Shown here piece after piece: positions 1 to 25,840 of a stretch of DNA of 64,000 nt. The stretch's first letter is position 1, and the number at the start of each line of letters is the position of its first letter. The notes below the pieces were generated by a model. The model saw nothing but the letters and a program-made list of their open reading frames with translations, searched no databases and was not told the DNA's origin. A program made the position numbers and the translations under genes. The stretch covers positions 558,001-622,000 of the forward strand of contig JANHCV010000007.1 of assembly GCA_025594325.1 (NCBI GenBank), in the 5' to 3' direction. This DNA comes from Blastocladiella emersonii ATCC 22665. Taxonomy: Eukaryota; Fungi; Blastocladiomycota.

Positions 1-1128
1 GTGATGGAGGGCACGATTTCGACGCTCGAGTCGCACCTGTCCGACGACATGAAGCAGAAGTTTCAGTCGGTGCTCGCCGACGGGTACGCCATGGGGATCG
101 GGTGGGTCGACACCAAGCTCGCCGAAACGTTCCCGCAGGCCAACCTGACCGCCGTGTACCGCCGCATCTCGCGCTCGTTTTCGCGCAGCCCGACGCCGAC
201 GCTCGTTGGGCTCTCCGCCGCGGCGAGCAGCGGGACGCCGGTGCTCGGCAAGGCGCTCGTCGAGGACCCCGCCGCGGTCGTCGGCGAGCTCGCGTTCCTG
301 ACGCGGCTCCCGCACACGGCCACGGTCGTCGCGGCGCTGACCACGGGCAACTTCTCGGCGCTCACCGACTACACGGTGCTCATGGGGTCGGCCATGGAGC
401 TCAAGGACAGCAGCAGCCACATGGTCGCGACCGTCACGAAACTGATCCAGGACTCGTCGACCGCCACGGCGTACCTTTCGGGCGCGCTCACGTCCATGGG
501 GACCGTCACGTTCAGCGTGCTGATCAGCATCACGCAGTACCTGCTCGACGCCTTCGACTTCATCTTCCAGGGCATCATGTTCCTGATCACGCTGCACACG
601 CTCGTGTCGCGCGAGACGTCGGTCACCGAGTGGTTCGCGCACCTGCTGATCCTGGCGGACCCGGAGCAGGAGCTGACGCGGTCGCTCGAGGACAACATCG
701 TGTCGGTGCTCATGTGCACGACCAAGCTGACCGTGTTCCACACGCTGCTGACGTGGTTCACCTTCTCTGCGTTCGGCGTCGACCTCGTCTACATCTCGAC
801 CGCCCTGACCGTCGTGCTCTCGATCGTCCCGCTCGTCCCGCCCATGTGGATCGCCGTCCCCGCCGCCATCTCGCTCTACTGGCAAACGCGCTTTTGGAGC
901 GCCACGGCCCTGCTCGTCATTCACTTCTACGCCGCGTGGTTCGTCGACCCGGCGTTCTTTGCCGAGATCCCCGAGGTCAACCCGTACTTTTCCGCCCTCG
1001 CCTTCATCCTCGGCCTCTGGGCGTTTGGTCTCGAGGGACTCGTCCTTGGCCCGCTTCTCATGACCGTCATCCCGACGCTCTTCTCCATGATGTCCAAGAA
1101 GCTTGGCGAATCCGAGCCCGTCGCGTGA
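1..1128 (+). CDS. TMEM245 / AI-2E-family multi-pass membrane protein, 5'-truncated by the window edge
   Basis: Open frame from base 1 with several hydrophobic segments. The C-terminal GLWAFGLEGLVLGPLLMTV resembles the AI-2E/TMEM245 signature. Strong G/C at third codon positions. Confidence 0.75.
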   Translation: MMEGTISTLESHLSDDMKQKFQSVLADGYAMGIGWVDTKLAETFPQANLTAVYRRISRSFSRSPTPTLVGLSAAASSGTPVLGKALVEDPAAVVGELAFLTRLPHTATVVAALTTGNFSALTDYTVLMGSAMELKDSSSHMVATVTKLIQDSSTATAYLSGALTSMGTVTFSVLISITQYLLDAFDFIFQGIMFLITLHTLVSRETSVTEWFAHLLILADPEQELTRSLEDNIVSVLMCTTKLTVFHTLLTWFTFSAFGVDLVYISTALTVVLSIVPLVPPMWIAVPAAISLYWQTRFWSATALLVIHFYAAWFVDPAFFAEIPEVNPYFSALAFILGLWAFGLEGLVLGPLLMTVIPTLFSMMSKKLGESEPVA

Positions 1129-1322: not shown

Positions 1323-3014
1323 ATGAATGATAATCGAATGAAACCCATGCAACTTAACTTGCTGCCTTCTCTCGTACTCGCGAACCTCGCCCTATACCTC
1401 GACGCGCGCGAGCTCTCGCGGCTGCGACAGACCTGCGTCGCGCTGAGCCGCGTCCCCGCGAGCGCCGCCGCTCTGCGCGAACACACCCGGTGGGCCATCG
1501 ACCGCGGATCCTTCTCTGATTTGCGCACGCTGCTCTTCGATCAACGTCGATCCATCCCCGAGGAGGACCTGTATGCGGTTTCAAAGATGCTTGCCAAGGG
1601 TGCCGTCGACCTTTGCGACATGGAGTTGCTCCGTTCCGTCCTCGACACCGCTGTCGCTCCAGCACCGCGCGGCCATGTCGGCATTTCTATCTTCCACCTG
1701 CTCCTTGACGCAACTCAGCTGGGGCAGCGCGGGGTTCCAGGCGCGCTCGACATCGCTCAATTCCTTATCATCAATCCGCGGCCTTGCTACATGCCAAGCC
1801 ACCACTTCTTCGGCGAACTCTTCTCTGCCTTTCGTACCGTCGCGTCATCCGTTGACTTGGACACGCTGGCCAAAACGCATCCGTTGCGGGCATTCAACCT
1901 TGCCGTTCTTGCTGACAACCAGCCGTACATCACCCAGCACCTCGCCGCATCATTGAAAGTCCTTGTCCAAGACCCAAGCGCGCGTGACCAACGCAGCGGG
2001 TGGTTCTCCATCACCGACCTGCTCAGCCTGACGCTTCTCCTTGGCAACGCGTCCACGACAAGTGCCATACTCGACCACCTTGAAGAGAATTACTGGCCGA
2101 CCGTCCGGAAATGCACAGTTGACTGGGAAGTCGTGCTGCTGGAAGCGCACGATGGGGTCGCTCCAGGGCCGCTCCGTCTCATGCTGACCCATTCTACAGC
2201 TCGAGACATGTTTGCGCGCACTCCTTTCAACGCGTTCCGTGCGATTGCTCACGGAAAGGTTGATAAGCTTAGGGCACGCCTTCGCAAATATGGTCGCAAA
2301 AAGCTGTATAAAGATGACCCCGAGCTGCGCATCTACTTGTTGTTGCCGCTTGCTTGGACCCTTGGCCAAGTCGCTTGCTTTGACGGCATGGTGCAGGAGC
2401 TGACGCCGCTGTGGAACGACAAGCCATACTTTGCAATTCTTTCATTGGAAGCTGCGTGCGAATACCCGAACCCGTCGCAGGCCAAGCACCTTCTCAATCA
2501 GCTCCTTCAAATGCAGACTGCCGTTCGTCGTCAGGTTGCCCTTCATTTCCCAAAGCTTGCGGAAATGGCTGCTTCGCGCGCCAACCTGAAGATGCTTCAG
2601 TGGTTGTTGGTGTCGGCACGCCCTCAAATTTTGCGATTGATGAACAGCTCCAAGCATGGTGCTGATCAAAAGCTTGACGTTGACGTTTCCGACTTGGTGC
2701 TTCGCGCAGCTAACGGTACTTCCGCGCCGACGAAGTGCCTGATCGATACAATTGGCTGGCTGCTGCAAGAGTTCTCCTTGGAGCCCAATCGCGAGAAACA
2801 GGCGATCCTCAAAGCGATTTGCAGCGACGAAATTCACTTCAATGCAGGATTGATCGAGTATCTGCTTTCTGACCTGGAACTGGACCCGTCATTCAACAAC
2901 AACGGGCTCCTGAAATACGTCCGGATCAACTGGACGTTCCCGACGGCCGAATCGCTTCTCTTACGCGACCCGCGAGTGGCAGCCATTGAGCGTTTACGGC
3001 TTGCACAGCGATGA
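1323..3014 (+). CDS. F-box-like protein with degenerate C-terminal ankyrin-like repeat (563 aa; start may be 1338 or 1347)
   Basis: Single long ORF. N-terminal LLPSLVLANLALYLDARELSRLRQTCVAL is F-box-like. C-terminal LDPSFNNN...LLLRDPRV resembles ankyrin-type capping repeats. Confidence 0.6.
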   Translation: MNDNRMKPMQLNLLPSLVLANLALYLDARELSRLRQTCVALSRVPASAAALREHTRWAIDRGSFSDLRTLLFDQRRSIPEEDLYAVSKMLAKGAVDLCDMELLRSVLDTAVAPAPRGHVGISIFHLLLDATQLGQRGVPGALDIAQFLIINPRPCYMPSHHFFGELFSAFRTVASSVDLDTLAKTHPLRAFNLAVLADNQPYITQHLAASLKVLVQDPSARDQRSGWFSITDLLSLTLLLGNASTTSAILDHLEENYWPTVRKCTVDWEVVLLEAHDGVAPGPLRLMLTHSTARDMFARTPFNAFRAIAHGKVDKLRARLRKYGRKKLYKDDPELRIYLLLPLAWTLGQVACFDGMVQELTPLWNDKPYFAILSLEAACEYPNPSQAKHLLNQLLQMQTAVRRQVALHFPKLAEMAASRANLKMLQWLLVSARPQILRLMNSSKHGADQKLDVDVSDLVLRAANGTSAPTKCLIDTIGWLLQEFSLEPNREKQAILKAICSDEIHFNAGLIEYLLSDLELDPSFNNNGLLKYVRINWTFPTAESLLLRDPRVAAIERLRLAQR

Positions 3015-3420
3015 CGCGGTCATGGCTCGGTCGGATGGATGAATTTTTACTGTTGCTGTGTAACCAATGAACGTATTTACTGGTGATAGCTTTCGATCTC
3101 GAGTGATTTCTGAGCTGATCTAAGACGATGGAGGTTTTTGACGCGTACGGGCAGCAACCGCGATGAACGCTCAGCGGGCGGTCGTGTTCCTAGCAGGCCC
3201 GGGTCTGTCGATTCCAGCCTCCGCGATGTTGCCCGGGCATGTATTTGCGGGTCGAACGCGAACGACGCAGTGTGGGCGGGACAAGACGCGTCACGCCACT
3301 TAGCCCCCCTGGTCACGTCTGATCGACGCGAGACGCGAGACATCACGTGTGGACGCGACGGGCTGCGGCTGAGGTCGGGCGGCCGCCCTTCCTCCTGTTC
3401 TCATCGTCCCAATCGCGAAA

Positions 3421-4422
3421 ATGACAACGAATGAATTGAAGACTTATCGCAACGGCTCAGAGAGACCAAAATCAACCTCTCGATCTTCAAAGCCAGCATG
3501 GCGGCCGACAGGCAAGACCATCGACCCGAAGCTGCGCGCGACGCTGCAGAGCCGCGCCATCACCCCGCCACCATCATCGGCTCCGCGACCCGCAACTCGC
3601 GCTGTTTCACAACCGCGCTCAACCTCTGCGCCGCTGACGCTTCCCGCGCGGCCTCCGACGAGCAGTCGCCATCCGCCGAGTGAGACGCCAGAACAACACG
3701 CGACTCCGCTGCCACCGCCCAAGTCCCCCGAAGCCCGGCGTGCTGAGCGCTCGGCCGAAATCCACTCGATCCTCGAGCGGATCCGAAAGTTACGCGCCGA
3801 GTGCACGCTCGACCCAGCGTCGCGACCAGCGGAGCCGTCGATACATGCGCCTGCTCGCTCGCCATCGTCTCCGCGGGAACCCGTGGGATCCACACCCTGT
3901 GCTACATCAGCCCCGCCACCACCACGCGCGTCATCACCACCCCGGCCCACTTCCCCGCCGCACTTCCAGCAACCGACCGAGAGCTCGACGCGGCACACGG
4001 TGCAGTGCGACTCGCGCCCTTGCCCGCCGCGCCGTCCTCGCCCCAAAAAGCTCGCCGGCCCCGTCGCCCCGCCGCCACCCGTCCCCGCGCGTCCGCCGCC
4101 GCTCGAGCTGCGGTCGCTCCGCATGCTCAAGGACATGCAGGCCGAGGAGCACCTGCGCGCGCTCAAGTCGTTCCGCCCGCGGCCGCTGGCGCTCCCGCGC
4201 CCACACATGGCGCTCTCGCGGCTCGATGATCTCGGGCCCGGGACCCACGGAACGGGCCAAGCGAGCCGCGCCGCGCTGCATCTGGCTATCGAGGCGTCGC
4301 TCGAGGACCTGTACCGCGAGCTTGACACGGAGGACGGCGTGTACGCGGGCCCGCCGGCCGACGGAGGGATCGGGGTCGGGTTTGGGATCGAGGAGGACTG
4401 GGAGCACGGGGCAGACTTTTGA
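3421..4422 (+). CDS. Pro/Ser-rich hypothetical protein (333 aa)
   Basis: ATG-started ORF with an ordered C-terminal part (LRMLKDMQAEEHLRALKSF, acidic tail). The antisense ORF 3444-4427 is treated as a shadow. Confidence 0.55.
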   Translation: MTTNELKTYRNGSERPKSTSRSSKPAWRPTGKTIDPKLRATLQSRAITPPPSSAPRPATRAVSQPRSTSAPLTLPARPPTSSRHPPSETPEQHATPLPPPKSPEARRAERSAEIHSILERIRKLRAECTLDPASRPAEPSIHAPARSPSSPREPVGSTPCATSAPPPPRASSPPRPTSPPHFQQPTESSTRHTVQCDSRPCPPRRPRPKKLAGPVAPPPPVPARPPPLELRSLRMLKDMQAEEHLRALKSFRPRPLALPRPHMALSRLDDLGPGTHGTGQASRAALHLAIEASLEDLYRELDTEDGVYAGPPADGGIGVGFGIEEDWEHGADF

Positions 4423-4618
4423 TACAATTTGACAAGGACTCCTAGTTGCCTGGTCTAGTTGGAGAAGGGATGAGCGCATACACGGGCGGGGCGCAGGGCG
4501 GAGCGATGCTGGCAGTTCCCTTGATGCTGGAGGCCTGACGAGCGACGCCTTTCGTCGCGGCGTTCGCCTTACCCTCCTTCGTTCCCGCTCCCCTTCACTT
4601 CAAGGGCTCCAACACTAG

Positions 4619-5843
4619 ATGCAACGTAACATGCAGCAACCATGGAGAACGGACCTAGGTCCTGAGATCAGAACCAAAATCTTGCTGTTGTGTGCTCCGC
4701 GGGCGGTGGTCCCTGCCGCCAGCCACGCCTTCAAGTACATTGCCCGGTGCGCTACAGTTCAGCTCGATTGGAAGACGCGCCCCAACCTTGGCACCAAGCC
4801 CGCGGTCTCGGTTCAGGACAGCTTGTGGTTCCTTTCTGCCGTCTTTGAGAAACGCAGCCTTCGGCAGAAGGCCTTGCGTCTCGCCAAGGCAAGCCTCGAG
4901 GCTGACGAATCCTGGTCGCACTCCCGCTTTGTGTGCAGAGGTACGGATATGGCGAAGATGGCGGTCCCGTTGTGAGCGGCGCATGCTGACCCGGCTTGTT
5001 TACGGAATAGCCCTTGCGACTATTCGTGACTACTGCGAGTCGTGGCCCGATCCGCGAATGGACGAGTTCTGCGAGCTCTTCGAGATTCCGACCCCCACCG
5101 AGATCTCCGAGCAGCTCGACCGCGCCATTCGTAGTCAGCACGAGGTGATCAAGTTTATGCGCGAGTACCCGCGGTACTACAGCCTCATCGTTCTCGAGGA
5201 GGCGTTCGACAAGTCCGTTGGCGCCGACGACTGCTACGTGCGCCCGCATCTGGCGATCCTGCTCACGCAGCTCATGTGCGCGGTCGAGGGCGCGGGCTGG
5301 ATCGGGCCCCAAGGTGCGGGCTGGATTGGCGCCGCGGACGTGTCCATGATCATTCAAGGTTACATCGACGAGGAACTGGCGGCATGGCTTCTGCTGCCTC
5401 TCATCGAGTACGCAACCCGTCTCCGGCGCCTCGGGTACATAGAAGAAGATGATGACGACGAGCCCTTTGACATTGGCTTTGTCGAGATCGCCATCCGCCG
5501 CGTTTTTGCTTCTTGGCGCGGCTATATCGAGGGCCCCAAGGAGTGCATGGATGACCTCGCCGCGGCGCTCCGCTCGCTGCTCCGCGTTGACATCAACAGC
5601 GACGACGATGACGATGACGCTCCCATCGTCGTGCTCGACTCGATTGCGCGCCGCTTTGTCCAGCGCGAGCGCGAGTGGGTCTTGCGCGAGGTCGTTGATT
5701 GGGCCCGCGCCGACGAGTTCCGCTGGATGTTCTCGCTGCTCAACGCCACGGACGGTCTGCTCAAGGACATGACGGCCGTTGGTCAGCAGGCCAAGTACGA
5801 CGAGTGGAAGGAGTACTACGACGATTTTGGATCCCCGTTTTGA
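4619..5843 (+). CDS. Two-exon hypothetical protein with F-box-like N-terminus (~384 aa)
   Basis: Intron 4941-5010 (GTACGG...CTGAC...TAG, phase 1) joins ORF 4619 in frame to ORF 4692. N-terminus DLGPEIRTKILLLC is F-box-like. Confidence 0.6.
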
Positions 5844-6000: not shown

Positions 6001-7302
6001 TCAAAGTGCACCAAAATTGGTGAAGCTCTGTGCAAAGATGTGTCGCCCAAGTTCCACGTCGGGCAAAACACGCTCTGCTGCAACTTGCTCAAGACCGTGC
6101 ATAAACGCGTCGTCCAAGCCGGAATTCTTAAGTGTGAGTTTCTCGGCAAACATGGGAAGCTGGCGAAGTACCGCGAGAGCGGCTGCTGAGCCAATCTCGT
6201 TTTCACTGAGATCGACGGACTTGATGGATGCAGGGACGCCAGCAGCAAGCAATACTGCCCCAGCGGCAGTCAGTTGAACATCTTGGAGCGTGAACGACGT
6301 GAGGTAAGGTGGGAAGTGGTGCGCGATCGCTCCCGCGCACTCGTCCATGAGCTCGCCCGATTCGCGAAGGTCAAGCTCCAGGAGCGATGCGGGAAGTGCA
6401 CAAAAGAGTTCGAGGTAGCTCGTTTCGTCGAAACCACAAACGTGCAATTCAAGCTTTTGGAGCTGCTGAGGCATGTTAGAAGCGAGGCGGCGAACTCCCG
6501 GTGACGGTTTTGGGAAGCCACCGTTCGACCAGGGCGTCATCGTTGGACTCGATGTACAAGTTTAAGGAAAGAGTGACCTTGGTGGCCTTGCTTGACGCGA
6601 TTATTTGCGCAAGAACCGAGAAGGGGAAGCAAAGATATGCGAACTCGATTTCATGAATCTGCTGCGTTGGGCTGGAAAGGGCCTCTGCGAGTATTTGAGC
6701 GCCGCATTTGCTGAGCCGGAAGCTCTCGAGACGCATTTTAGTCATGAAACCAGATGAGATTCCCTCGGCCTCCTGGGCTACGAGTAGGTCGCCAGGCGCG
6801 CAATTGATTGCGCTCTAATGCTCATCAAGCGGGGACGGTTAGCGAAGATTGATGAGTTTTCGTGAAGGTCGACGCATACCGGTTCAGCGGTGCGGCGCAC
6901 TGAGTCAAACCACGCCGGATACTTGTCCAGAATCAAAGGCAGCGCGTCGTGCTCGGGTGCCCAGATCGAGTAGCCAGTGAGGGGAAGCCCGGAACGTCGC
7001 CACCAATCAATGACGTTGAAGCGTTTCAAGCGAAGGACCTCTTCGAGCGCGGAGCGGCTGTTGGAAACCACGCGGCCGCTCGCCCTCCAAAGCTCGAGCG
7101 CCCACACGTGGCCACCTGCCATCATGCCTGCAAGCGGGACCTTGTCGACAACGTGGTTGAGAAGTGTCCGAAAGACTCGCGGGGCGTCACGCCGCAGCAG
7201 GACCCGGGCGTACTGCGCCAAGCCGACGCGGTCTGTCGGGTCGTGAAGTAGGACGGCGCGGACGAGTATGTCCTCAAGCAGGTGATTTACATGTAGTTTC
7301 AT
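6001..7302 (-). pseudogene. ANK-like/LRR family copy 1; internal ~400-nt deletion with frameshift near 6500
   Basis: Exon 1 is 7302-6880 (MKLHVNH...). Intron 6879-6815 is GTATGC...GCTAAC...TAG. Exon 2 starts SAINCAPGDL and stops at 6476. The remaining LRRs lie in another frame (ORF 6001-6540). Exon 2 spans 814 nt versus 1209-1245 nt in paralogs. Confidence 0.8.
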
Positions 7303-7406
7303 GATGTCTAGTATGCATGCGATGTCATACGGGGGGGGGGCAAGGAACGATGGGACGGCGACGACGGCGGTCAGAGCGAGCTGCCAAGCCTCAACCGTCG
7401 AGCGGG

Positions 7407-7447
7407 CATCGCGTGATCAAGACGTGATTTTGGGGCGCGTCTCGCAG
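7407..7447 (-). promoter_or_regulatory. Conserved upstream motif of LRR copy 1
   Basis: + strand CGCGTGATCAAGACGTGATTTTGGGGCGCGTCTCG, about 105-145 bp upstream of the ATG. Shared with the other four copies. Confidence 0.6.
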
Positions 7448-7603
7448 CTCGCAGCGACGGGCGCAGGCGAAGGACGAATCTCTCCTTAAATCCCTTAGAC
7501 TAGAATGGATGTGTTCAAACAATCAAATTATGAGTACAATTACGAGAGTGAACAGAAAAACGCACTTGGACAAGGTCTAGTTGCGAAGCGGGGGCGACGT
7601 GAC

Positions 7604-9305
7604 TCAAAACGTGGCGTTGATGCGGTCCCGGACAGCTGCGACAGCTGCAAGGGAAAAGTTGTTGTCCGTCAAATCGAGCGCTGGGTGCTGCAGATACTGG
7701 ATGTTCCGCTCAATAAGATGGTTGCTGATCGAGGCCAGGAACGCGTCAGTGAGGCCCGTGCCGCACAGCTTAAGGACGCGCGCTACGCCAAAAGCTTTGG
7801 AAAAGACAGTGAACGCTGCCGCAGAGCCAATGGCATCATTCTTGCTCAGGCTGATTGACACGAGCGTGTTGGGGAAGCGCGAGGCGAGGAGAGCCGCGCC
7901 AGCTGAGGTGAGCTGCACCTCCTCAAGCGCGAGCGAGGTCAGCCCCGGCGGGAAGCTGTGTGCGAGTGCGGCAGCGCAGTCGTCCGTGAGTTCGTTAAAA
8001 TCGGACAATTCCAGTACGCGAAGTGTAGTGGGGAGCGCGGCAAGCAGTTCGCAAAGCCCATCACTGCCCAGGTGGCACAACGTCAACATGAGTTGCTCGA
8101 GTTGAGGCGGCATGTTAGCAGCAAGAAGGTGGCATCCCTTCGAGCCGACATGGCTGATTTCGAGGCGGAATTTGCGAAGCGACGGAGGCAAATTGGCAAC
8201 GATTTCGTGCGCCGACTCGGAATCGAGCAACTCCATTGCGCAGATCTCCAGCACCCGGAGAGTGGAAGGAAGGCGTGCCATGAGGGCCTTACAATCCGCG
8301 TGCATCAACTCGACGTCATGCATCAAAAGCGACCGGAGTCCTTGCGGCAACCCGTGTGCCAAATCGAGAAAAGTCTGCTTGTTTGGACCAAGCGAGACAA
8401 TAGAGATCAGCTCGAGCGCAGGAGGGAGATGGCGAAAGTAGAGAGCGGACGGAGGCACAAGAAAGTCGCAACCACCGCCCATATAGTGGAACTCCTTGCA
8501 AGTGTCGGGAAGCCACTGCGTTGAAGGCGACGAGTCCACCAAGTCCTCGACGAAGTAGCTATCTTGAAGCTTGAAGACTCGCGCCGTACTCGAGGTCGCG
8601 ATTTGTGCAACAACGGGGTAGGACAGGCACATATCGTTGAGCTCAATTTCGTCCACCCGTTGGTCGGGACTGGCGAAAGCGTCGGAGAGAATTTGGGCAC
8701 CCGCGAGGCTCAAGCGGCAGTCCTTGAGTTCCAGGTGAGTCGTGTTGCCCGACGCAATATCGTCACGCACCTGCGCGGCGATAAGGTCGCCAGGCGCACA
8801 AGCGAAGCCGCCCTGATGCATGCAACGCGTTGGGGAACTGGTCAGATTCGCCCGTACAGGGAGATGAGCGGGAATTGAGGCGTACCGGCGGAAGAGCCCT
8901 GCGAACCGTTTCAAACCACGCAGGAGATTTGTCCAAGAGCAGTTGTAGCATATTGTGGCCTTCGTGGAAGGTGCGCTCGTGGACGGGAAGGCTAAAGCGA
9001 CGCCACCAGTCTACTACGTTGAAGCGACCGGCTCGAACAACGCGCACGAAGTCGCGTTCCTTGATGGAAAGCGGTCGGCCACTCGCTCGCCAAAGTTCAA
9101 GGGCCCACAGGTAGTTACCAACTGCCGCATCTGCGACAGGAAGGTCGTCAAGCACATGGTCCACAATGGCACGAAAGACGCGAGGGGCCTGGGCGCGCGG
9201 CAGAACCCGGGCGTACTGTGCCAAGCCGGCCCGGTCGGCTGGGTCGTGAAGGCGGACCGCGCAGACCAGGATGTGTTCAAGGATGTGGTTTACATGAAGT
9301 TTCAT
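7604..9305 (-). CDS. ANK-like/LRR (RNI-like) family copy 2, intact, ~542 aa
   Basis: Exon 1 is 9305-8886. Intron 8885-8813 is GTACGC...CTGAC...CAG, phase 0. Exon 2 is 8812-7604, with repeated LPxxLxxLxL units. Confidence 0.85.
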
Positions 9306-9431
9306 GGTGTCTAGTTCATGGTTGATGAGGCGGGCGGTGTCGGGAGAGAGGCAGCGACGACGATGGTTGCAGCGGGACGGGTGCGGCTGGGCATCAACTG
9401 ATCGAAGGCGATCGAAAAATGTAAGACCTCA

Positions 9432-9470
9432 GCACGTGACCATGGCGTGATATCGAGACGCGTCTCGCAG
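9432..9470 (-). promoter_or_regulatory. Conserved upstream motif of LRR copy 2
   Basis: + strand CACGTGACCATGGCGTGATATCGAGACGCGTCTCG. Confidence 0.6.
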
Positions 9471-9711
9471 CGCCGCCGCTCGCCGCTCCTTCCCAAAGCT
9501 TGACGCGTCAAGACGCATTCTACGCGAGTAAAAAAATTGGGGACCTGTTTAGAGGCTGTTGTTTCGCATCATGTGGGGCCGGGATGCGCGAGGTGAGTTG
9601 TGAGGGTGAGCAACTCCCGACCGTAACCCAACGCGTGGATTTCATGGATTTTCGTCGCACGTTGCATTATATTTATCAATATCATGGATTATTACAGAAA
9701 ACAACGGCCGT

Positions 9712-11443
9712 TTACGGAAGGGCTGCTTTGGTGAACGCCACCCCAACGGCTTGGAGCAGGGTGGCGACTTCGGAGTTATTCACACCGCCAATGGTGAAGT
9801 GGTTCCCATCCACGTTGATTCTGGGCAGCCGGCGACCCGCATTAAGATGACGGCTGATCCCCTGTACGAACGCGGTATCAAGTTCGGTGTCGCGCAGGGA
9901 AAGAAGCTCGAAAGACTCGGGTTTTCCCGCGTTGAGGAGAGCGAGGGCCGCCTCCGACTTGACCGGGTTCTTGTCGAGGATAAGTGTTTTGAGGTGTTCA
10001 GGCAGATGTCCGGCAAGCAGCATTGTGCCCGCCGAAGTGAGGTCCACGTCTTTCAGCGTAAGCGAGCGAAGCAAGGGCGGGAAGTTGCTCGCAAGCGCCT
10101 TTGCGCACTCATCTGTGAACTGAGCGTAACCATTTATCTCGAAGGCTTGGAGAGTTCGGGGGAGGCCGCTCACCAAATCACGGAAACCGTCACCACGCAA
10201 CGCGCATGCGGTGAGCGAAAGCTCGACGAGACCAGGTGGCAGGTTCGCTGCAAGGAGCTGAGTCCCTTCATCGCGAAGGCTAAGGAATTTGAGGAAGAGT
10301 TTGGTGAGTGAGAGTGGCAAGTAGGTTACAATCTCCTGAGAGCTGGTGCGACCGAACGGCAACAATCTGTCCAGAGAGCTGATTTCGAGTTCCTTAAGTT
10401 TGGGCGGGAGACGCGACGTGAGCGCTTTGCAAGCATTGCGGTCCATGGCCACCCCGATCAGCGAAAGAGACACGAGTGTGCGCGGCAAACCCTCGACCAA
10501 ATTGGACATGAAATCGCGGCTCAAGGAAGCGGCTTGGATGGTGAGCCGCCGAAGCGAAGCGGGCATATGGCGCAGAAACAGCGTCGAGATGGGAAGCGCA
10601 GGTTCGCACTCCGTGCTACCGGCCACGAAAACAAACTCCTCGGTCGTTTTGGGGAGCCATGGCCCTTCAAACGGCTTGGCATCGGCGTCGTCGGTGTAGT
10701 AGTTGCAGGAGAGTTCGACTCGCGTCGCTGTGCTTGCTGACGCAACCGCTGCTACGGCAGCAAGTGGCAGGCAGGCTCCATGGAATCTGATCAAATCAAC
10801 CCGCTGTCGCGAACTTGCGAGCGCCTCGACGAACAGGCGGGAACCGCCCTCGCCGAGTCGAACGCCTTCGAGTTGCACGGTAGTTGACTTGCCTGAAGCA
10901 ACATCAGCACTCATCTGGGCAGCAAGGATGTCGCCTGGAGCGCAAGTCACAGCGGCCTAACGTTGCTGCAGGAGGTCAGATTTGCGAGAGATGAGAATCC
11001 GAGCTGAAGAAAGGAAAACGCACGGGGCCAAGTGTTTGCCGAACGGCTTCGTACCACGGCGGCGCATTATCCAGGAGCACATCGACCGGGCTCTCCTGAT
11101 TAGTTTGCGAGCCCCGATTCGCGCAACCGATGCCCTCGCGGCGCCACCAATCAATGGCCTTGAATCGGCGATGCTTCACTGCGCGTTCAAGCACACTCCT
11201 TTGGTCCTGGAATGGTCGGCCAGCTGCTTTCCACTTCAGGGCCCAAACGTGGCCGTCGGCCATGATGTCCAGGAGCGAGCGGTCATTGATAGCGCGTTTG
11301 ATGATGGCAAGGTACACGCGCGGCGCATCAAGGCGCCGCAAGACCCGTGAGTACTGAGCGAGCCCGTGGCCATCAGCTGGGTCGTGGAGCCGGACCGCCC
11401 AGACCAGGATGACCTCGAGAATGTGGTTTACGTTTAGCTTCAT
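9712..11443 (-). CDS. ANK-like/LRR family copy 3, intact, ~554 aa
   Basis: Exon 1 is 11443-11024 (MKLNVNH...). Intron 11023-10957 is GTGCGT...CTGAC...TAG, phase 0. Exon 2 is 10956-9712, starting AAVTCAPGDI. Confidence 0.85.
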
Positions 11444-11568
11444 GGTGCTTAATGGTGCGTGCCCAAGACCAAGTCGTGGGAGCCTTGACTGCAGGAGCTT
11501 CGGCGAAGTGCAGTCGGCAACAGCGGGCTGAATTGCATGCATGCATGCGAACAGGCGGAGCCGAGTCT

Positions 11569-11607
11569 CCACGTGAGCTGGACATGATTTTGCGACGCGT
11601 CTCACGG
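11569..11607 (-). promoter_or_regulatory. Conserved upstream motif of LRR copy 3
   Basis: + strand CACGTGAGCTGGACATGATTTTGCGACGCGTCTC. Confidence 0.6.
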
Positions 11608-11840
11608 CCGAGCCGGCCTGGCGAGCGGAAGTGAGCAGCCACGACATGTTCGCGTAGCTGCTCCGCGTTGCGAAGAGACGTCACGTTTAGACGTTGCTTG
11701 CGCAACGAATCCGGAACAAGTCATGCTTTGTCTCTCCTCTCAGCGAATGCTCTTGACATCGCGCGGTAGTTGCATCTCAAAGTTGTTTATTTATCGACCG
11801 ACGACAAAGGTGGAACATAGCAAATTGACAAAAACGACCA

Positions 11841-13572
11841 TCAAAACTGGAACTCAAACTCGGCATTGATGCGGGTCCGAATGGCCGCCACAGCTTCCTG
11901 GGAGAAGCTGTTGTTTTCCAGCCGGAAGAAAGGACGGTGGATCGAGAAAATGTCCCGCTCGATCATGTACGCGTTGAGCATATCCAAGAAAGTGTCATCA
12001 AGTCCCGTCCCCGAGAGATAGAGATCGCGCAAGGAGCGGGGAGCCTTAGCAAAGAATTCAAACGAAGCCTCCGACGCAATTTCGCTGTTGCTACTGAGAT
12101 TGATGGCCTCGATCCCTGCGGGTAGGCGTGACGCTAGTAGCTTCGCGCCCTTCGAGGTCATTCCCACGTCTATAAGCGTAAGCGAGGTCAGATGCGGCGG
12201 AATGCTGTTCGCAAGCGCTGCCGCGCAGTCCTTGGTGAAGGCGGCAAACTGATCAATGTAAAGGGACTTGAGGGACTTGGGAAGCGCTCCGAGGAGCTCG
12301 CGGAACCCGTCGCCACCCAGGTTGCACATAACCAGCGAAAGCGTCGCGAGCGCCGCCGGCATGTTAGCGGCGAAGCGGTGAGCCGCATCCGAATCGATTT
12401 CGTGAAACTCGAGATGAAGCTCGCGAAGCGACGGTGGCAGGTTGGAGACAAGGTCGTGTGCGGGCCTAGCGTAATCTAGATGGCGGGTAAGCTCGAGTTT
12501 TTGGAGCGTAGGAGGGACCCGCGTCATAAACTCCGAATAATCGTGTGATTCCAAAGTAAAGCCCTTGAGCGTGAGCGAGATGAGGCCACTGGGAAGCCCG
12601 CTCGCGAGATCCATGAAAGCAGTTCTTTCGAACCCGGAACAATCGATATAAATCGACTCCAGCGAAGCGGGGAGATGCCGGAGGTACATCGCCGATTGAG
12701 GTACCTGGAAACTATCCTCGCCAGTGAAGTGAAGCTTTTTGGCAGTGTTGGGAAGCCACTGGTTCGGACAATCAGGGCCCACGGTGTCCTCGACGTAATA
12801 GTTGGAGCAAAGCTTGAATGTCTGCGCCTTGCTCGAAGTTGCGAGGAGTGACAGCACAGGAAACGAGAGGCAGAGCCCAGAAAGCTCAATCGACACAACC
12901 TGCTGGGCCGGACTGGCAAAGGCGTCGGCAATGAAGCGGGCGCCGCGCATGCTCAAGCGAGCACTCGAGAGTTGCAGGCTCGAAACTTCGCCTGAGACGA
13001 TGCCGTCGCAGGCCTGTGCGGCAAGCAGGTCGCCAGGCGCACAAGGGACGCTCTCCTGAAAATAAACAGCGGCGCACGAGGGTAGTGGTTAGCCTGGTTT
13101 CCCAAGACGAGGAAATTTGGCTTGAGTGGAGACGCACCGGGCCAAGGCTCTTGCGAACCGTTTCGAACCAGCGCGGCGTCTTGTCCAAAAGGAGGGCGAG
13201 AAATTCGCGATCCGAGTGGTCGGGATGGAAGGAGTTGGCGTCTTCGATAATAGGCAGGCCTGCGCGGCGCCACCAGTCTAAGACGTTGAAGTGACCGCCA
13301 TAGACCGCGCGCATAAACTGGTGGTATAAGGTGAGAAGCGGCCGGCCGCTCGCCTTTCTCAGTTTGAGGGCCCAGACGTGGCCGCCTGCCACTGCGTCGC
13401 CGACCGGAATGTTATCAAGCACGTGGTTCATGATGGTCCGGAAGACGTAAGGTGCGTCGCGGCGAGGCAGGACCCGGGCGTACTGCGCCAAGCCGACGCT
13501 GTCGGTTGGGTTGTGAAGGCGGACCGCACGGACAAGTATGTCTTCAAGCAGGTGGTTTACATGTAGTTTCAT
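11841..13572 (-). CDS. ANK-like/LRR family copy 4, intact, ~549 aa
   Basis: Exon 1 is 13572-13138. Intron 13137-13056 is GTGCGT...CTAAC...CAG, phase 0. Exon 2 is 13055-11841, starting ESVPCAPGDL. Confidence 0.85.
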
Positions 13573-18361: not shown

Positions 18362-21300
18362 GGTGGCGGTGGTACTACTTTTTGGGGATCTTCTTCTTCT
18401 TCTTCTCGAGGCTGTCGTGAGGACATGAGGATCGAGAGAGGAGGGAGGCCGGGGGAGCGACGCGGTCTTGTAGGCGCGCGCGCGGTGCCCCCGTCCGCCC
18501 GCGGGCACCGGCGCGTCGCGATGCTCGAGCTCAGCCGCCACTGCCGTCGTCGTTGTTGATGCGGAGGCGCGTCGGCGTGTACCGTTTCTCGCGACGCGTC
18601 GCGGCGGCCGAGGTGGAGACACGCGCGAGACGTGCAGTGGGCCGCAGCAGCACGTGCCCGACGCGTCGTGGCCGTGCGAGACACCCGGGTGGAGACACGT
18701 CGCGCGAACGGGTGGACGAGGGCGAGGGCATCGTGGACGAGGCGGGCGGCGGGTGCTGGCGGTGAGCACGTCGCGCGGTGCGTGGTGCGTGGTGAAGGGC
18801 GGCGCGAGCGTGCGAGGCCGAGGACGTATCAGGGTGATGACGAAGTAGAGCGGCCGTGCAAGTCGCTGAGGGTGGAGAGGAGAGCGGTCGGAGACCGGCC
18901 GTGGTCGGCTGCTGTCACGCCACCGCGGCCGCGAGCAGCGACCGCTTCGGCACGCGTCAGCGGCGTGCGCGCGCAAACTCTGCAGCCGCAGACGGTGATG
19001 AAGGACGATGATGGATCGGCGCAGGGACTCGATGCAAAGTGATGGGCGGGCGGCGGCGAGCACGCTGGCGGGTCGCCGAGGCGCGGGCGTGGTCGGTCAT
19101 GGACTCGGTATTGAGCGGATGCAGTCGGACGCGAGGGAGGGGCGAGCGAAACCGATGCTGATGAGCCGAGTGATGATGAGCTGATGAGGGAGAGCACCGG
19201 TGCGAGACGAGACGCCGCCCCCACAAGCGTTTCCGCTGCCACCGCCTCGTCGCCGATCGGCCTCGCTCTCCTCCCCTCCGCTCCGCTCGACGGCTGCACC
19301 TGCCGCAAAACTACTCGCACACCATGCAGCAGACTCGCGGGTGGCCGCCGACGCGCCCGCCCGCTCGGCCTCGGCCACGTCGCGACCGCGCGTCCGACGC
19401 CGACCGCGCGAGCCCGAGGCGGTCTTGAGGATGTCGATACATTGCGAAGAGTGACGAGAGCGAGCGGATCGTGCTTCAACGACGCCTTCGCCGGTATCGT
19501 CGCCGCAAACGTCTGTGCTGCTCCGCACACACGCGATGACGTCACCCAACTCGCTGACGCGCGCGACAGCCCTGCCGCGTGCACATGAGCGTCGCGTCGT
19601 CCTCTTTGAGCTTCTGGCCATCTTGGCGCGAAAGCTGAGCCAGTGCTGCCCGTCCGTCCGAAAAATGCTCCGCTCGATGAGCTCCCCGGCCGATCGCAAG
19701 ACTGCCTGACTTCCCGTGCCCATCCCGTCCTTGAACCCGCACGCCCCCTCGACTTGCTACTTTATGAGCTCTTCGTAGACGCGCTCGCAAAAACATGTTC
19801 TTATTCCTCGAGATTACAGGCGAGCAACTCGCATGAGTTGGCTCCTGGTTGCTGCTGTACTATCACCTTGGCGACCTCGGGCACCGTGACCCAGCTCTCA
19901 ACGAGCTTGGCTGACCACGACCTTGCGTACGCGTCCGATGGCCCTCCACCCACGAGTATCACATCGTGAGCCACCGTTAAGACGCGCATTGTGCTGCATC
20001 GCGAGTTACTCAACGCAAGGCGCTATCGCGTGCAGGTTGGCTCGCTGCGCCACCGCGGACTAGAGTCGCGGCACGATGTGAGGACGATTGCTACGACGCT
20101 GAGGTTGGGATCGAGTTACGCTGCGAGCGTTGGCACGGCCCGCTTCACGAGGTGTGAGTCGGCGGCAGGACGGTGGACGCGCGTAACACAAAACTCGAGT
20201 GAGCTGGCCATCACGGCCAAAAACATGCATATTTGCTGGCATCTCATCCACGCTCGTGTCTTTGAGATCGACTGACAGCAGCAACGCGCCCGCGGCTCAT
20301 GGCCCACAAATCTGCAGGGCTGTCACGGCCTTACACGCAACCTGAATGGTGCCCGTAATAACGCTGGATCAGAGGAGAGATGCAATACTGAAACCATTCG
20401 TGTTTATATGTTTTGCTCGGCGGCGCTCCGACAAGAGGGTTCGAGAGAAAAGATCAATAGCCCGAGCGGGCTTAAAAAACGCTAAACTTGATGCGACCCT
20501 CGATCGCTGCAAGCGCGAGCTCACTGAACGAGTTCATTCCAAGAACCATGTGTGGAGTCGACAAGGCTGGGCGGTTGCACTTGGTCAGCTCGTTGCCAAT
20601 TTTCTCAAGAAACGCGTCGTCAAGGCCTGTCGACGTTAGGGAAATCTCGCGCAGGAACAGATGCGTTATTTGGAAAACGACGAATGCGGCCTCCGAGCCG
20701 ATTTGGTTACCACTGAAGTCAATGGCCTGGAGCGTTTTCGGCGCATTGGTAACAAGCAAAATGGCGCTGGCCGGCGTCAGCTCCACGCAATAAAGCGTAA
20801 GCGAGGTGAGACCAGCCGGGAAGTTGTTCGCCAGGGCCGTCGCACACCCGTCAGTGAAGTTGGGCAGGCTGACGATTTGTCAGGGTTTGCAGAATCTTGG
20901 GGAGCCCACCGAAAAGCTCGCAAACGTCGTCTCCTTCGAATGCGCTCAATTCAAGGTGGAGTTGCTCCAGCGCGGGCGGCATGTGGGCTGCAAGGAGTCG
21001 AAGCGCGTATTCGTCAACATCGCACATCTCCAGTTGGAAAAGAAGGAGCGACTGCGGCAATTTGGCCACAATCTCGCAGGTTGAGTCGAACGGGGTGCCT
21101 TCGCGGAGAATTTTGAGTTTCTGCAGAGTGGGCGGGAGGTGGGCCATGATCGCATCGCAGTCGGCGGGCTCGAGTCCCACGTCAGTGAGCGAGAGGGAAA
21201 CAAAACCAGGAGGAATCCCAGCAGCAAGAGTCGGGAGGTATTCGCAATCATATTCGAGAGACTCGATCGTGATGTGGCGAAGCGAAGCGGGGAAACGGCT

Positions 21301-21859
21301 GAGGTAAGGTTTGGGCGAGGGGTTTTGAAACCCTAGACCGCCAACAAGGTGAAGTTCCTTGGCGGTGTCGGGAAGCCATTGCTTGGGGCACGATTCGTTC
21401 TCGCCGCTGACGTCGACGTCCTCGACAAAATAGTTTCCGCCCAGTCGAAAAGTTCGCGCTTTGCTTGAAGAGGCAAGCTGCGCGAGCACAGGGTACGAGA
21501 GGCACATTTGCTGGAGTTCGATCACGTCAACTTGTTGTTTAGGGCTGGCGAAAGCGTTGGCCAAAATACGTGCGCCGCCCTCGCTGAGACGCGCACCCGA
21601 TAATTTCAGGCACGGCGTGTCGCCCGAGGCAATGTCCTTGCTCATCTGCGCAGCAAGCAAATCGCCCGGAGCGCAGGTGATCGAGTTCTGTTGGGTGTGG
21701 CGAATTGTCAGCAGGGGAAAACACATGCGGTTCGTGGGACTTGGAGACGTACCAGTCCGAGCGTGTCGCGAACTGTGCCGTACCACGAAGGATCCATATC
21801 CAAAAAGATGCGCAAAGCTTCGGTACTACAGCTCGCACAGTGAAAAGGGCCCCGGGCTC

Positions 21860-22104
21860 CAAAGGATACAAAGGATTAGCAAAGTCCCTTTGGAGTTTAC
21901 TTTGCGTTTCCTTTGGACGGAACACTTCTAAGTCACTTTGGAGTCCTTTGCGGCGACTGAGTTACTTTGAAAACTTTGGGTGAGAGCCGGTTCAAGTCGC
22001 TTTGAATCCTTTGGACTGCGGTTCCTTTTGCGCGGTTTTTGGCCTAAGCGTCCTCAAAGCTTCACAAAGGAATCCGTCCAAAGTATACAAAGGACCTTTG
22101 TATA
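21860..22104. repeat. Left subterminal CAAAG/CTTTG repeat array
   Basis: Many CAAAG/CTTTG pentamers. Dyads CAAAG-N3-CTTTG at 21880-21892 and 22088-22100, the latter within TATACAAAGGACCTTTGTATA. Confidence 0.85.
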
Positions 22105-24221
22105 GGGATCACGGGACGCAAAAAAAAAGCGGGTACTGCGACGACCGCCGCCGCCACGACCACGACCACGGTCCGCCCGCACCGCACCCGCGCCGCGCCC
22201 GCGTTGAGCCCATGCACGCGCGCGCGCCGCTGCCGCGGTCCTCGCGCCGCCGCCGTCACTCGCGGGCGTGGTCATCTTGAAGCACTTGACGCGCTCGGTC
22301 GAGGCTACAGCGGGGCGAGCGCGGGAGACCGAGGTGAGGAGCGGGATCGAGGGAGCTGTCGTGCAAGCAGAGCGAGAACGTACCCGTGTCGCGCCCGCCT
22401 TGGCCGCCGCGGCACCTGAGCGCTCGAATAGAAGGAACGGATCGCGGCAGGCGCCGAGTTAGTCATCGCCGCGCTGGTGGAGGCGAGAAGCGCGATCGTA
22501 CCGAGACCGCACGCGACTTCGTCAAGCTTGAGCGCTGAGTTGGCACCGTCTCCGCGCGTCTAGACGGGCAGCGAGCGCGAGCGATCGGACGTGAGACACT
22601 GAGCTGCGACCCAGCGCGCTTGCAGGAGACGTACCCGCTCGCCGTGATCGTGTCGGCAACCGACGCGGCTGCGCTACGCGGGCCACTCAGCGCGGGTGCG
22701 GGGCGCGCGAGCTACGGGATCGTGACGAGAGCGAGTGAGACACACTGCGCGGGCGCGGATGTGCGAGAGACGGCGAGCAGGGCGGCGGCGGAGCGGCATC
22801 CACGTCAGTCTCGCGCCCATCACCACGAGAGGTGGGCGGGCGGGCGACCGACGTCGCCGTCGCGCGCGTGCGCCGTGACGAGCGAGTCGCGGGGACGCGC
22901 ACCGTGACGTGGAGCCAAGCGTGCGAGGGCGGGTGCGCGTCGTCGTGTAGCGTCGATCGGTCGGGCGGCAAGCTCCACTTGGTCGGCGGGCGCGGGTCGA
23001 GTGTGCAGCGACGGCGGCGTGGAGCGGCGGATGGGATGGCGGCGGCGGCGAGCGTGTGCGGGAGCGTCAGTCGGTGCAAGGGGACCCGCCCGCTTATGTA
23101 GGGGCCGGGCGGGAGCGAGCGAGCAGGGGGCGGGGGCGGGTGGCTGCGGAAGCGCAAGAGTCCCTCGCCGAAGCGCCGAAGCGGCCAACGCGCAGCGCGC
23201 CGATCAAAAAACGCGCATCACGTGTTTTTGCGACGCGTCTCGCACTGTCTCGCGCGTCCGGCCCGAGCCGCACCCGACGCGTCCGCGCCACCACGGACCA
23301 CCATAAGCGATGCAGAAAAGCAATCGTAGATACTCAAACGTTGGCCCTCGTGCCCGTAAGGAAACAGAACGCTCTGCCTCGCAGACTCGTCACTCACCAC
23401 GACTCGCGAGACGTCTTGGTGCTCGCGCGCAACCTACTATCCACCCTCAAAAACGCACCACCTGGAACTCCCTCATCACCCGCACCAACGGTACTGCTGG
23501 CTGGGGCTGCGGGAGCGCGTCGAAGCGCTCGTGAATCGGATCGCCCCAGTTGACCCCAGCGAGCTTGCGAATCCACTCCTAAGCGATGTCTAACGGACGC
23601 ACCTAGTCAGGCATCGCAGCGTCGGTCACCCAAGGAACGAGTGTTGTGGATGGAAGGCGACGAAGCGTCAGAAAAACGACGGGTGGCGGACGAGCGCGGC
23701 CGAGCGCGGCGAAGTCCAGAAATGGAGTCCGCGACGGGGCTGGCTGCAGGTTGGCTGCCACCGGGCCGGCCGCCGCACGCCTTCTCTCCCAAACCCCGAC
23801 ACACCAGCGACGCGGGACCTTTGTCACTTACTGCAGATGCATCAGCAACATTAAAGCCTTCTCTAGACCGCGCCATTTGGGTGAACCTGTACCTCTTGTC
23901 AGATCGACCAGGCCGCCACACAGCGCCACCCTTACGCTGCTTCAGGCGATTTCTGACCGGCTACTACCTGGAAAGCAAGGATCTTATGTCAGACAAGTTC
24001 TAAGCTATTTATAAGGCCTTCGAGTGCACCACGAGGCGCCCCCAGTGTACCCTTCCTTGTTCCGCATTGTCAGCGATCTATGGGGAGCGGGTGATGCTCG
24101 TTCGCTAGTATCGTTTTCCTAATCACCCAATTGTAACGGTCGCCGTGGTGGAGCGCGCGGTTGACGAATTTCACGACCTTACGACCGCCATCAGAGGCTC
24201 GACCAGACGATCCGCGCCGCC

Positions 24222-25064: not shown

Positions 25065-25182
25065 AGCGATAAATAATTATGTCTGCTGCTACGTCAATGC
25101 AGTGCCGACCCATCAGCGAGCGGATCAGGTGGCGAATCTGCTGCTCGCCGCCGCGACCAGCTATCCGAACCACTACGTGCAG

Positions 25183-25371: not shown

Positions 25372-25840
25372 CCCCGCCTGTTCACTGTGTCGGGACATCT
25401 TGATCTTCGAAAGGCAGCCCCGACCGACGCCACCAGGCAAAGATTTCGAAACGATCGTTGCTGATTGCGCTCACAAGCACTTTGCTGTTAACGCTGAGCG
25501 GGCGTCCAAGGGCTCTCCACAGCGCAAGTGCGAAGACAGGGCCGCGTTTCACCAAATCGGATAAGGTGCGTTTACCGATAGCATGTTCGACGATGGCGCT
25601 GAAGACGCGCGGCGCCTGGCTTTGTGGGAGGACGCGAGCGTAGTGCGCCATGGCATCGCCGTCGCCCGGGTCGTGAAGGCGCACGGCGCGGGCCAAGATC
25701 TCCTCAAGCAAGTCATTTACAGCTAGTTTCATGGTGTTCAGCTACACTGTCGGTTGCGCTGGCCTGGGTGCAGGGTGCGGAGGTGAAGGAGGGCGGCGAC
25801 GTTGCGAGCCACCAGCCGCACCGCGGAGAAGCGAAACTAG

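Follow-up and report, generated by a model that had tools for sequence, protein, structure and literature searches.

A tandem array of ankyrin-LRR genes in Blastocladiella emersonii belongs to a very large lineage-specific family

The analysed window, a stretch of 64,000 nucleotides from Blastocladiella emersonii ATCC 22665, carries three intact genes, a fourth with an internal deletion and, close by, a split copy, all built on the same plan of a conserved N-terminal leader, two ankyrin repeats (ANK) and a leucine-rich repeat (LRR) domain. The family to which they belong is Blastocladiella-specific and very large. We read the region, tentatively and with slightly less than even confidence, as one old local cluster of this family, in which the variable LRR arc would bind targets and the leader would dock a common partner, with a Skp1-type protein as the leading candidate.

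Gene models in the window

Positions 6001-13572 of the window hold four minus-strand units arranged head-to-tail at a spacing of about 2.0-2.1 kb. Their ATGs lie at 7302, 9305, 11443 and 13572 (gaps of 2003, 2138 and 2129 bases), and each unit follows one plan: an exon 1 of 140-145 codons, a phase-0 GT..AG intron of 65-82 nt and an LRR exon 2 of about 400 codons. The features are as follows.

6880..7302, minus strand: unit 1 exon 1, 141 codons, intact (ORF and sequence read)
6815..6879, minus strand: unit 1 intron, 65 nt, phase 0, GTATGC..TAG
6001..6814, minus strand: unit 1 exon 2 remnant, tblastn pieces in two frames (also sequence read)
8886..9305, minus strand: unit 2 exon 1, 140 codons, with the three-helix leader at aa 1-55 and two ankyrin repeats at aa 55-128 (ORF, AF2 model and profiles)
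8813..8885, minus strand: unit 2 intron, 73 nt, phase 0, GTACGC..CAG; the homologous intron is removed in KAI9155905.1
7604..8812, minus strand: unit 2 exon 2, 402 codons and stop, RNI/FBXL-type LRR (LRR_6 22.5 bits, repeats and paralogue model)
11024..11443, minus strand: unit 3 exon 1, 140 codons
10957..11023, minus strand: unit 3 intron, 67 nt, phase 0, GTGCGT..TAG
9712..10956, minus strand: unit 3 exon 2, 414 codons and stop, LRR domain
13138..13572, minus strand: unit 4 exon 1, 145 codons
13056..13137, minus strand: unit 4 intron, 82 nt, phase 0, GTGCGT..CAG
11841..13055, minus strand: unit 4 exon 2, 404 codons and stop, LRR domain (FNIP and LRR_6 Pfam matches)
25400..25732, minus strand: exon 1 fragment of the fifth copy, 111 aa aligned within an ORF of 116 aa
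20490..21681, minus strand: LRR exon of the fifth copy, about 3.7 kb away from its own exon 1, with a frameshift near 20880

The preliminary description of this DNA had reported four head-to-tail units and a fifth start at 25732, and all five ATGs were found on the minus strand. The module motifs that it quoted (MKLxVN..LE.IL..AVRLHDP; GHVWALELWRASG; RFNV.DWWRR.GLP) were present in the sequence as well. Its proposal of two-exon genes split by the ORF track also agreed with our models, as units 1-4 each have one phase-0 intron, at a homologous position, bridging the two ORFs. These introns share a GT[AG][CT]G donor, a [CT]AG acceptor and a branch-like motif (CTAAC or CTGAC), and xxxxCAPGD opens exon 2 in every unit. 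The same boundary intron is removed in the spliced GenBank paralogue KAI9155905.1, which is named only 'hypothetical protein'. The family is not 'hidden', as had been supposed, since GenBank has such spliced members modelled as hypothetical proteins.

It had further been claimed that all four units and the fifth copy encode a module joined to an LRR protein, and this was borne out for units 2, 3 and 4, which are intact and encode 542, 554 and 549 aa. Unit 1 lacks about 120 residues of the LRR (approximately residues 105-223) and switches frame near 6505, so its exon 2 is a probable pseudogene. A second intron of 40 nt, which would restore the frame of unit 1, was rejected, being too short beside introns of 65-82 nt and leaving the same residues missing. 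The fifth copy is also broken: its exon 1 runs for only about 111-116 aa before a stop, and the frameshifted LRR lies apart from it (21681..20490).

Domain make-up and fold

For whole-protein searches and folding, intronless paralogues (L030, L018, L027 and others) and the GenBank protein P0120 were used in place of the window genes. The head consists of a 55-aa three-helix leader followed by two ankyrin repeats, and a linker helix precedes the LRR. In the structure models the leader helices occupy residues 5-19, 25-34 and 41-54, and the AF2 model of unit 2 exon 1 had a pLDDT of 86. The leader was always N-terminal, followed by ANK or by ANK and LRR, and like the F-box (about 45 aa) it forms a three-helix domain ahead of a repeat domain.

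The ankyrin-like nature proposed earlier for the head was supported by a profile search, which matched 3965 proteins, mostly through repeated matches to positions 53-109; these proteins carry Pfam Ank_4, and the profile also matched a DARPin at E 2e-5. Pfam ankyrin models directly matched two of the 24 modules (best E 0.002), neither of them a window copy, and comparison of AF2 residues 55-128 with ankyrin domains gave VIA Z 5-6 over some 70 aa at an rmsd of about 3, values that lie within the noise for helical repeats. Foldseek of the head model against the PDB gave no match at E <= 0.001, and an ESM Atlas shape search with the same model stayed below a TM of 0.4. The leader profile matched nothing among PDB sequences at E <= 10, and no recognisable relative of the leader from outside Blastocladiomycota was seen among the matches examined.

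Exon 2 of units 2-4 contains 8-9 clear LPxxLxxLxL repeats of 26-27 aa, in line with the earlier count of at least eight, together with degenerate flanking repeats; the LRR tail as a whole has about 13 repeats of this length. The scaffold positions (LP, L..L.L) were invariant across 10 paralogues at about 30% identity, and in the same 10 paralogues the entropy of all non-scaffold positions was near saturation, so that the comparison is silent on a hypervariable concave face. Pfam LRR_6 (PF13516, cut-off 23.4 bits) scored 22.5 bits in unit 2 and 20.6 in unit 4, with no match in unit 3, and reached 24.0 and 25.8 bits in paralogues, over the cut-off. The FNIP repeat (PF05725, cut-off 21) matched a single stretch each in unit 4 exon 2 (26.7 bits) and in paralogue L004 (28.1 bits), and did not match units 2 and 3.

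The full-length model of the intronless paralogue L030, standing in for the window genes, had a pLDDT of 88 and a pTM of 0.83 and showed a horseshoe fold superposable on ribonuclease inhibitor (RI) and FBXL. Foldseek matched this model to ribonuclease inhibitor at E 1.8e-14 and to FBXL2-SKP1 at E 4.5e-12, and VIA-align gave Z 27.1 for FBXL2 (rmsd 3.1 over 327 residues) and Z 25-26 for ribonuclease inhibitor over about 400 aa. These results, taken from the paralogue model, support the RNI-type LRR assigned in the preliminary description. An Atlas feature search returned generic LRR_6 clusters only.

Pfam searches of the window units and paralogues revealed no kinase, NACHT or NB-ARC domain. The single regex match to a Walker A motif falls within a conserved IASG motif and is not a real one, and the only 19-residue stretch resembling a membrane segment is a buried LRR strand. 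The full-length paralogue model contains leader, ANK and LRR alone. On the Pfam searches, this model and the motif and hydrophobicity checks we rejected NLR, kinase, signal-peptide and membrane readings, and these results uphold the earlier statement that TM segment, P-loop and kinase are all lacking. The proteins appear soluble and modular.

Family size and candidate functions

A genome-wide count of members, suggested in the preliminary description, gave at least 150 scored matches in the B. emersonii genome, all at E <= 9e-11, among 430 candidates on 14 contigs, and the family probably has several hundred members in total. The array, which had been taken as the system itself, makes up only about 3% of this family of at least 150 genes. 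Family statistics were drawn from 50 loci; LRRs follow the head in 50 of 51 sampled copies, 11 of which are single ORFs. The proposed lineage specificity held, and the family does not stand in one-to-one orthology to RanGAP or to a known FBXL. We found no paper describing it in the literature. Word-index protein searches gave nothing useful for unit 2 exon 2 or for residues 1-140 of L004 and only a weak LRR match for the intronless paralogue L018; such blank searches mean little, because family members do exist in GenBank and were found by exhaustive search. The window copies are 47-63% identical in exon 1, while in exon 2 the figure is 36-49%, and judged from this divergence they are old. Copy turnover, proposed earlier as birth-and-death evolution, is visible in the broken copies and in near-identical recent duplicates elsewhere in the genome, such as the pairs C15:2556k and C15:2560k or C20:467k and C20:469k.

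In the explanation that we prefer, the variable LRR arc, a curved surface, would bind diverse protein targets, and the conserved leader would dock all members onto one common partner. The leading candidate for this role is a Skp1-type adaptor from a cullin-RING ubiquitin ligase, and on this view the members would be divergent F-box-like substrate receptors. The same leader occurs at the extreme N-terminus of both ANK-only and ANK+LRR proteins, a behaviour also shown by F-box, BTB and SOCS-box domains. Three Skp1-family loci were found in the genome, the canonical one at C15:2012492-2012704 and two others at C1:792512 and C1:3199651. A complex with the Skp1 paralogue L032:1471-2016:-, modelled in place of the canonical three-exon Skp1, was predicted at an ipSAE of 0.52 (runs 0.55, 0.50 and 0.52), against 0.01 for the best of 3 controls; pLDDT in the partner did not fall below 63, and at least 27% of contacts agreed between runs. 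The tool returned a verdict of 'weak support' because passes at 0.60 or under are unreliable in its calibration. There, 51 of 78 solved complexes and 2 of 108 mismatched pairs attained the mark, and scores of 0.60 or less account for only 5 passes among the 78 solved complexes and for all 4 passing mismatches. By this calibration a score in the 0.52 range needs a good prior, failing which it is wrong more often than it is right, and it may reflect remembered likeness to solved complexes instead of real binding.

Profile comparison of the leader with 27 F-boxes of the same genome gave a weak hhalign match (P 0.0039 and 0.017, probability 3-9%, 38-39 columns in register), with controls at P 0.05 and 0.35 and with 6 of 200 column shuffles reaching the real score. 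Pfam F-box models (PF00646 and PF12937) matched none of 24 leaders even at E <= 10, and none of the 47 canonical F-box-like matches of a genome-wide PF12937 scan was a family member. An HMM from the genome's own F-boxes matched no family leader, VIA-align of residues 1-54 placed no F-box structure among its best 50 matches, and the canonical LP motif of the F-box is absent from the leader. From the earlier proposal of a recognition system or SCF adaptor, the adaptor part gained a weakly passing complex prediction and a weak profile match, and we infer both roles only.

The family might instead consist of NOD-less cytosolic sensors, in which the LRR arc would read non-self from parasites, viruses or bacteria and the head would signal by oligomerising or by non-ubiquitin recruitment, giving an innate-immunity-like repertoire. 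We regard this as unlikely. In its favour, the family is very large, lineage-specific and tandem, with broken and freshly duplicated copies, its LRR fold is that of the NLRP, NLRC and RI sensors, its leader has no detectable F-box signature, and a survey including three Blastocladiomycota proteomes found no NLRs in the phylum (PMC12258605). However, Pfam searches revealed no signalling or effector domain of known immune systems, the entropy over 10 paralogues did not separate the LRR faces, and the age of the window copies, at 36-63% identity, argues against a fast local arms race in the window. In a version joined to the preferred explanation, several hundred ankyrin-LRR receptors would serve as a cytosolic non-self repertoire, with a private F-box-like leader linking target binding to a Skp1/cullin ligase. 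This version is very unlikely in our estimate; if true, it would mean that fungi independently evolved an LRR-based, immune-like system coupled to ubiquitin.

Two further readings do without foreign molecules or without function. Axonemal LRR proteins and RanGAP are among the structural neighbours of the paralogue model (Z 22-24.5), the feature search gave a dynein regulatory complex subunit 5 cluster at 0.89, and B. emersonii zoospores are flagellated (PMC9730499), all of which would suit ordinary scaffold or regulatory LRR proteins, for instance of the flagellar apparatus or in GTPase regulation, multiplied by neutral tandem and segmental duplication. More than 150 copies are hard to account for by a scaffold function, however. 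A scaffold with a housekeeping role is as a rule encoded once per genome and conserved throughout the fungi, whereas word-index protein searches found no orthologue outside the lineage. The Allomyces and B. britannica relatives, among the matches listed, are leader+ANK only. This reading is distinctly unlikely. The least likely explanation is that much of the family is DNA in decay or spread by selfish amplification, travelling with mobile elements or segmental duplications, and that most copies yield no useful protein. Two of the five window copies are broken, the LRR is spread over more than one frame in 10 of 51 sampled copies, several genome-wide family matches contain stops, and contig 20 holds identical inverted copies; some family copies may indeed be dead. 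Against this, reading frames of about 530-600 codons have stayed open in three window copies and in the 11 sampled copies that are single ORFs, even though divergence is 36-63%, which implies long purifying selection, and intron position and phase are conserved, as are the scaffold positions of the LRR across the distant paralogues.

Comparison with known systems

The closest resemblance is to the FBXL F-box/LRR receptors of SCF ligases (FBXL2 6o60, FBXL17 6wcq and Skp2; TIR1 and COI1 of plants), which like the family combine a small N-terminal helical domain with a curved RNI-like LRR of about 26-residue repeats; FBXL2 was the best structural match to the paralogue model. In contrast to these receptors, the family leader has neither an F-box by Pfam or PDB-sequence profile nor the LP motif, and two ankyrin repeats stand between leader and LRR. 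The family is also far larger than fungal FBXL sets, beside the 47 canonical F-box-like matches in this genome. Ribonuclease inhibitor and the NLRP/NLRC LRRs share the horseshoe fold and the Pfam LRR_6 matches, but their repeats are 28-29 aa long against 26-27 aa in the family, which has a different head and no NACHT or P-loop. Fungi are usually held to be poor in LRR receptors, and fungal NLRs use WD40, ANK, TPR or HEAT repeats.

Within Blastocladiomycota, the leader is shared by proteins of Allomyces javanicus (KAJ3357586.1, leader-HMM E 1e-21), B. britannica (KAI9223998.1, 3.5e-11) and B. emersonii (KAI9179536.1, 2.6e-4). All three are hypothetical proteins with the same W-rich ankyrin repeat type as the family, but with 3-6 more ankyrin repeats in place of LRRs. 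W-rich ankyrin proteins of chytrids and giant-virus metagenomes (Zopfochytrium KAI9348936.1, Geranomyces KAJ3160158.1 and UniRef A0A6C0E688) match family positions 53-109 5-10 times each, down to E 7e-69; they have neither leader nor LRR, so the repeat type is shared and the architecture is not.

Nematode and plant F-box families are lineage-specific expansions of ubiquitin-adaptor repeat proteins. F-box/BTB-LRR expansions are likewise reported for Parachlamydiaceae (PMC4209131). By analogy, the Blastocladiella family is hundreds-strong and clustered, with adaptor-like repeat proteins and fast turnover, although those expansions are placed in the ubiquitin system by recognisable F-box or BTB domains and it is not. 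One fungus gives at least 150 genes to a single cytosolic ankyrin-LRR architecture, compared with about 10,000 annotated genes (PMC9730499). If the leader is a divergent F-box, the substrate-receptor repertoire of B. emersonii would be among the largest known from any fungus; otherwise the leader would be a new docking module. Either way, this is a well-defined and experimentally tractable family in an emerging model organism.

Structure of the array and of the encoded head and tail

As proposed in the preliminary description, the ORFs, the DNA reading and a splice-site scan revealed four head-to-tail minus-strand units with two exons each (window 6001-13572; ATGs at 7302, 9305, 11443 and 13572). 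In each unit, a first ORF of 140-145 codons starts MKLxVNxxLExIL..AV.LHDP, includes GHVWALELWRASG and RFNV.DWWRR.GLP and ends in stops; downstream of it, in a different frame, lies another ORF, roughly 400 codons long. One phase-0 intron lies at a homologous place in every unit (65, 73, 67 and 82 nt in units 1-4, none a multiple of three), with donors GTATGC, GTACGC, GTGCGT and GTGCGT, respectively, TAG or CAG acceptors, and an internal branch-like CTAAC or CTGAC motif. Exon 2 starts with xxxxCAPGD in all units, and the predicted products of units 2, 3 and 4 would be 542, 554 and 549 aa.

All five copies claimed previously were located, but two of them are broken, and apart from these two corrections the earlier observation is sound. 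In unit 1, tblastn placed LRR residues 5-104 and 224-369 in two separate frames and found no LRR sequence between residues 104 and 224. In the fifth copy, exon 1 is cut short and the distant LRR exon contains a frameshift near 20880. The features in and around the array are as follows:

1-1128, plus strand: ORF entering from the window edge; Pfam PF01594, AI-2E family transporter (PerM-like), E 3.8e-13, unusual in a fungus
1323-3014, 3421-4422 and 4692-5843, plus strand (1323-5843, upstream of the array): ORFs without a Pfam match at E <= 0.01, F-box included
25732..25400: exon 1 fragment of the fifth copy
21682-25399: about 3.7 kb between the two parts of the fifth copy, with an ORF (24222-25064, plus strand) without a Pfam match
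21681..20490: LRR exon of the fifth copy, 3.7 kb from its exon 1

Searches were run with single exons, intronless paralogues or a deposited protein. The AlphaFold2 model of the exon 1 product (the head), built from 24 aligned heads, was confident and all-helical (pLDDT 86), with two ankyrin repeats at residues 55-128. An exhaustive profile search with this alignment gave 3965 proteins at E <= 1e-3, most matching only positions 53-109, 5-10 times each; those checked, from chytrids, Blastocladiomycota and giant-virus metagenomes, carry Pfam Ank_4. Together with a DARPin match of the head profile in the PDB (E 2e-5), this bears out the ankyrin-like reading of the head; VIA-align also lists ankyrin domains, at Z 5-6. 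Its W-rich repeat type is abundant in chytrids and in giant-virus metagenome proteins (P0003 and P0152, UniRef A0A6C0E688 and A0A6C0E657). Residues 1-54, the leader, form three helices in the AlphaFold2 model and have no convincing relative: there was no Pfam match, the leader profile had zero matches to PDB sequences at E <= 10, and neither Foldseek nor an Atlas search returned a relative. The same leader stands at the front of ANK-only proteins in Allomyces javanicus, B. britannica and B. emersonii.

Exon 2 contains 8-9 clear LPxxLxxLxLxxxxLxxxGxxxLAxx repeats of 26-27 aa with degenerate flanking repeats, and matches Pfam LRR_6 and FNIP near or above threshold. Ten full-length sequences were aligned (the intronless paralogue L030, seven further intronless paralogues, the GenBank protein P0120, and locus L004 read through its in-frame intron), and the resulting L030 model showed about 13 beta-alpha units (pLDDT 88, pTM 0.83). 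Foldseek matched it to ribonuclease inhibitor (1.8e-14) and FBXL2-SKP1 (4.5e-12), and further to NLRP LRRs, COI1 and TIR1.

VIA-align matches of the L030 model
FBXL2: Z 27.1, rmsd 3.1, 327 aa
Ribonuclease inhibitor: Z 25-26
NLRP3: Z 24.9
RipG4: Z 24.9
RanGAP: Z 24.5

These matches of a paralogue model bear out the RNI-type LRR assignment. The LRR fold alone does not decide the functional class. Pfam and a motif scan found no NACHT, no kinase and no real P-loop in the window exons and paralogues, in agreement with the reported lack of kinase and P-loop.

Size, spread and history of the family

When unit 2 exon 1 was searched against all six frames of the 32.65-Mb genome, at least 150 of 430 first-look candidates were scored as matches, all at E <= 9e-11. 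The array put forward as the system is therefore real, but represents just a few members of a family found across the genome. The 150 scored matches lie on 14 contigs and are spread very unevenly, which suggests family-rich genome compartments.

Scored matches per contig
C20 (1.8 Mb): 37
C4: 26
C2: 20
C19: 16
C5: 11
C1 (5.1 Mb): 2

Custom HMMs of the leader, the ankyrin pair and the LRR were used to examine architecture at 50 loci. LRRs followed within about 200 nt of the head in 50 of 51 leader-bearing copies; 11 of these 50 are single ORFs (450-605 codons), 29 have a frame change or a stop where the domains meet, as expected from an intron, and 10 have the LRR spread over more than one frame, indicating extra introns or damage. 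Tandem arrangement is the rule: in many sampled loci another copy lies at a distance of about 2.2 kb.

In a maximum-likelihood tree of heads, the five window copies and three at C19:660-673 kb grouped together on long branches with support of 95/81, and identical or nearly identical pairs occurred in other parts of the genome. In exon 1 the array copies are 47-63% identical, in exon 2 36-49%. These comparisons show old local duplication in the array, with gain and loss continuing elsewhere in the genome. Two identical copies, L072 (C20:407930-410930) and L073 (C20:544836-547836), form an inverted segmental duplication, pointing in opposite directions at a distance of 135 kb, and the copies at C15:2556k and C15:2560k are nearly identical tandem neighbours.

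Contrary to the earlier reading, the family is not hidden. P0120, found in the head profile search, is GenBank KAI9155905.1 ([quoted passage not shown]), identical (100%) to paralogue locus L028 once two in-frame introns (66 and 72 nt) are removed, the first exactly at the head/LRR boundary. Thus the family is already modelled with its boundary intron in public annotation, but without a name. It is unmentioned in the B. emersonii genome paper, which reports a 21-contig assembly (PMC9730499), and our literature searches found no description of it. Another deposited B. emersonii model, KAI9188824.1 (P0074; 1049 aa), fuses leader and ankyrin repeats with an entire SART-1 domain and may be two genes merged by annotation.

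The F-box question and competing explanations

The single mechanism we favor, at somewhat less than an even chance, is that family proteins would work like F-box/LRR substrate receptors. The leader has the position and size of an F-box, and its joining to two different repeat classes also counts for this reading. In hhalign comparisons with 27 F-boxes of this genome it aligned in the expected register over 38-39 columns, with P 0.0039 and 0.017 as against 0.05 and 0.35 for controls; 6 of 200 column shuffles reached the real score. Three Skp1-family loci were found:

C15:2012492-2012704 (L031/L034): canonical Skp1, three exons
L032:1471-2016, minus strand, contig 1: diverged intronless paralogue, 182 aa
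L033:1090-1680, plus strand, contig 1: diverged intronless paralogue, 197 aa

A complex was predicted for the unit 2 head with the L032 paralogue. Its ipSAE was 0.52 (0.55, 0.50, 0.52; best of three controls 0.01) on a scale whose mark is reached by 51/78 solved complexes and 2/108 mismatches, and where passes at <= 0.60 are rare for true pairs (5/78) and include all 4 passing mismatches. The partner reached a pLDDT of at least 63, separate runs agreed in at least 27% of contacts, and the tool grades the modelled complex as weak support. On the other side, no profile search (Pfam, genome scan, PDB sequences, HMM of the genome's own F-boxes) matched an F-box to the leader, the LP motif was not found in it, and F-box structures were not among its top VIA-align rows. 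On this evidence we do not class the family with the F-box proteins.

A NOD-less immune-like sensor would suit the family's size, clustering and turnover, as well as the reported absence of NLRs from Blastocladiomycota (PMC12258605); however, no effector domain was found in the proteins, and we regard this role as unlikely. An ordinary scaffold role, which some structural neighbours fit, seems less likely still, since it accords with neither the copy number nor the lineage restriction. Least probable is largely decaying or selfish DNA: broken copies agree with it, but open frames remain long and scaffold residues invariant at about 30% identity. The "recognition system" proposed earlier does not follow from the evidence; the structural part of that reading holds. 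The leader + 2 ANK + RNI-LRR architecture is previously undescribed and hugely amplified in one fungal lineage. The family can be likened to known repeat-protein adaptors as a variant, distinguished by this combination of leader, two ankyrin repeats and RNI-type LRR.
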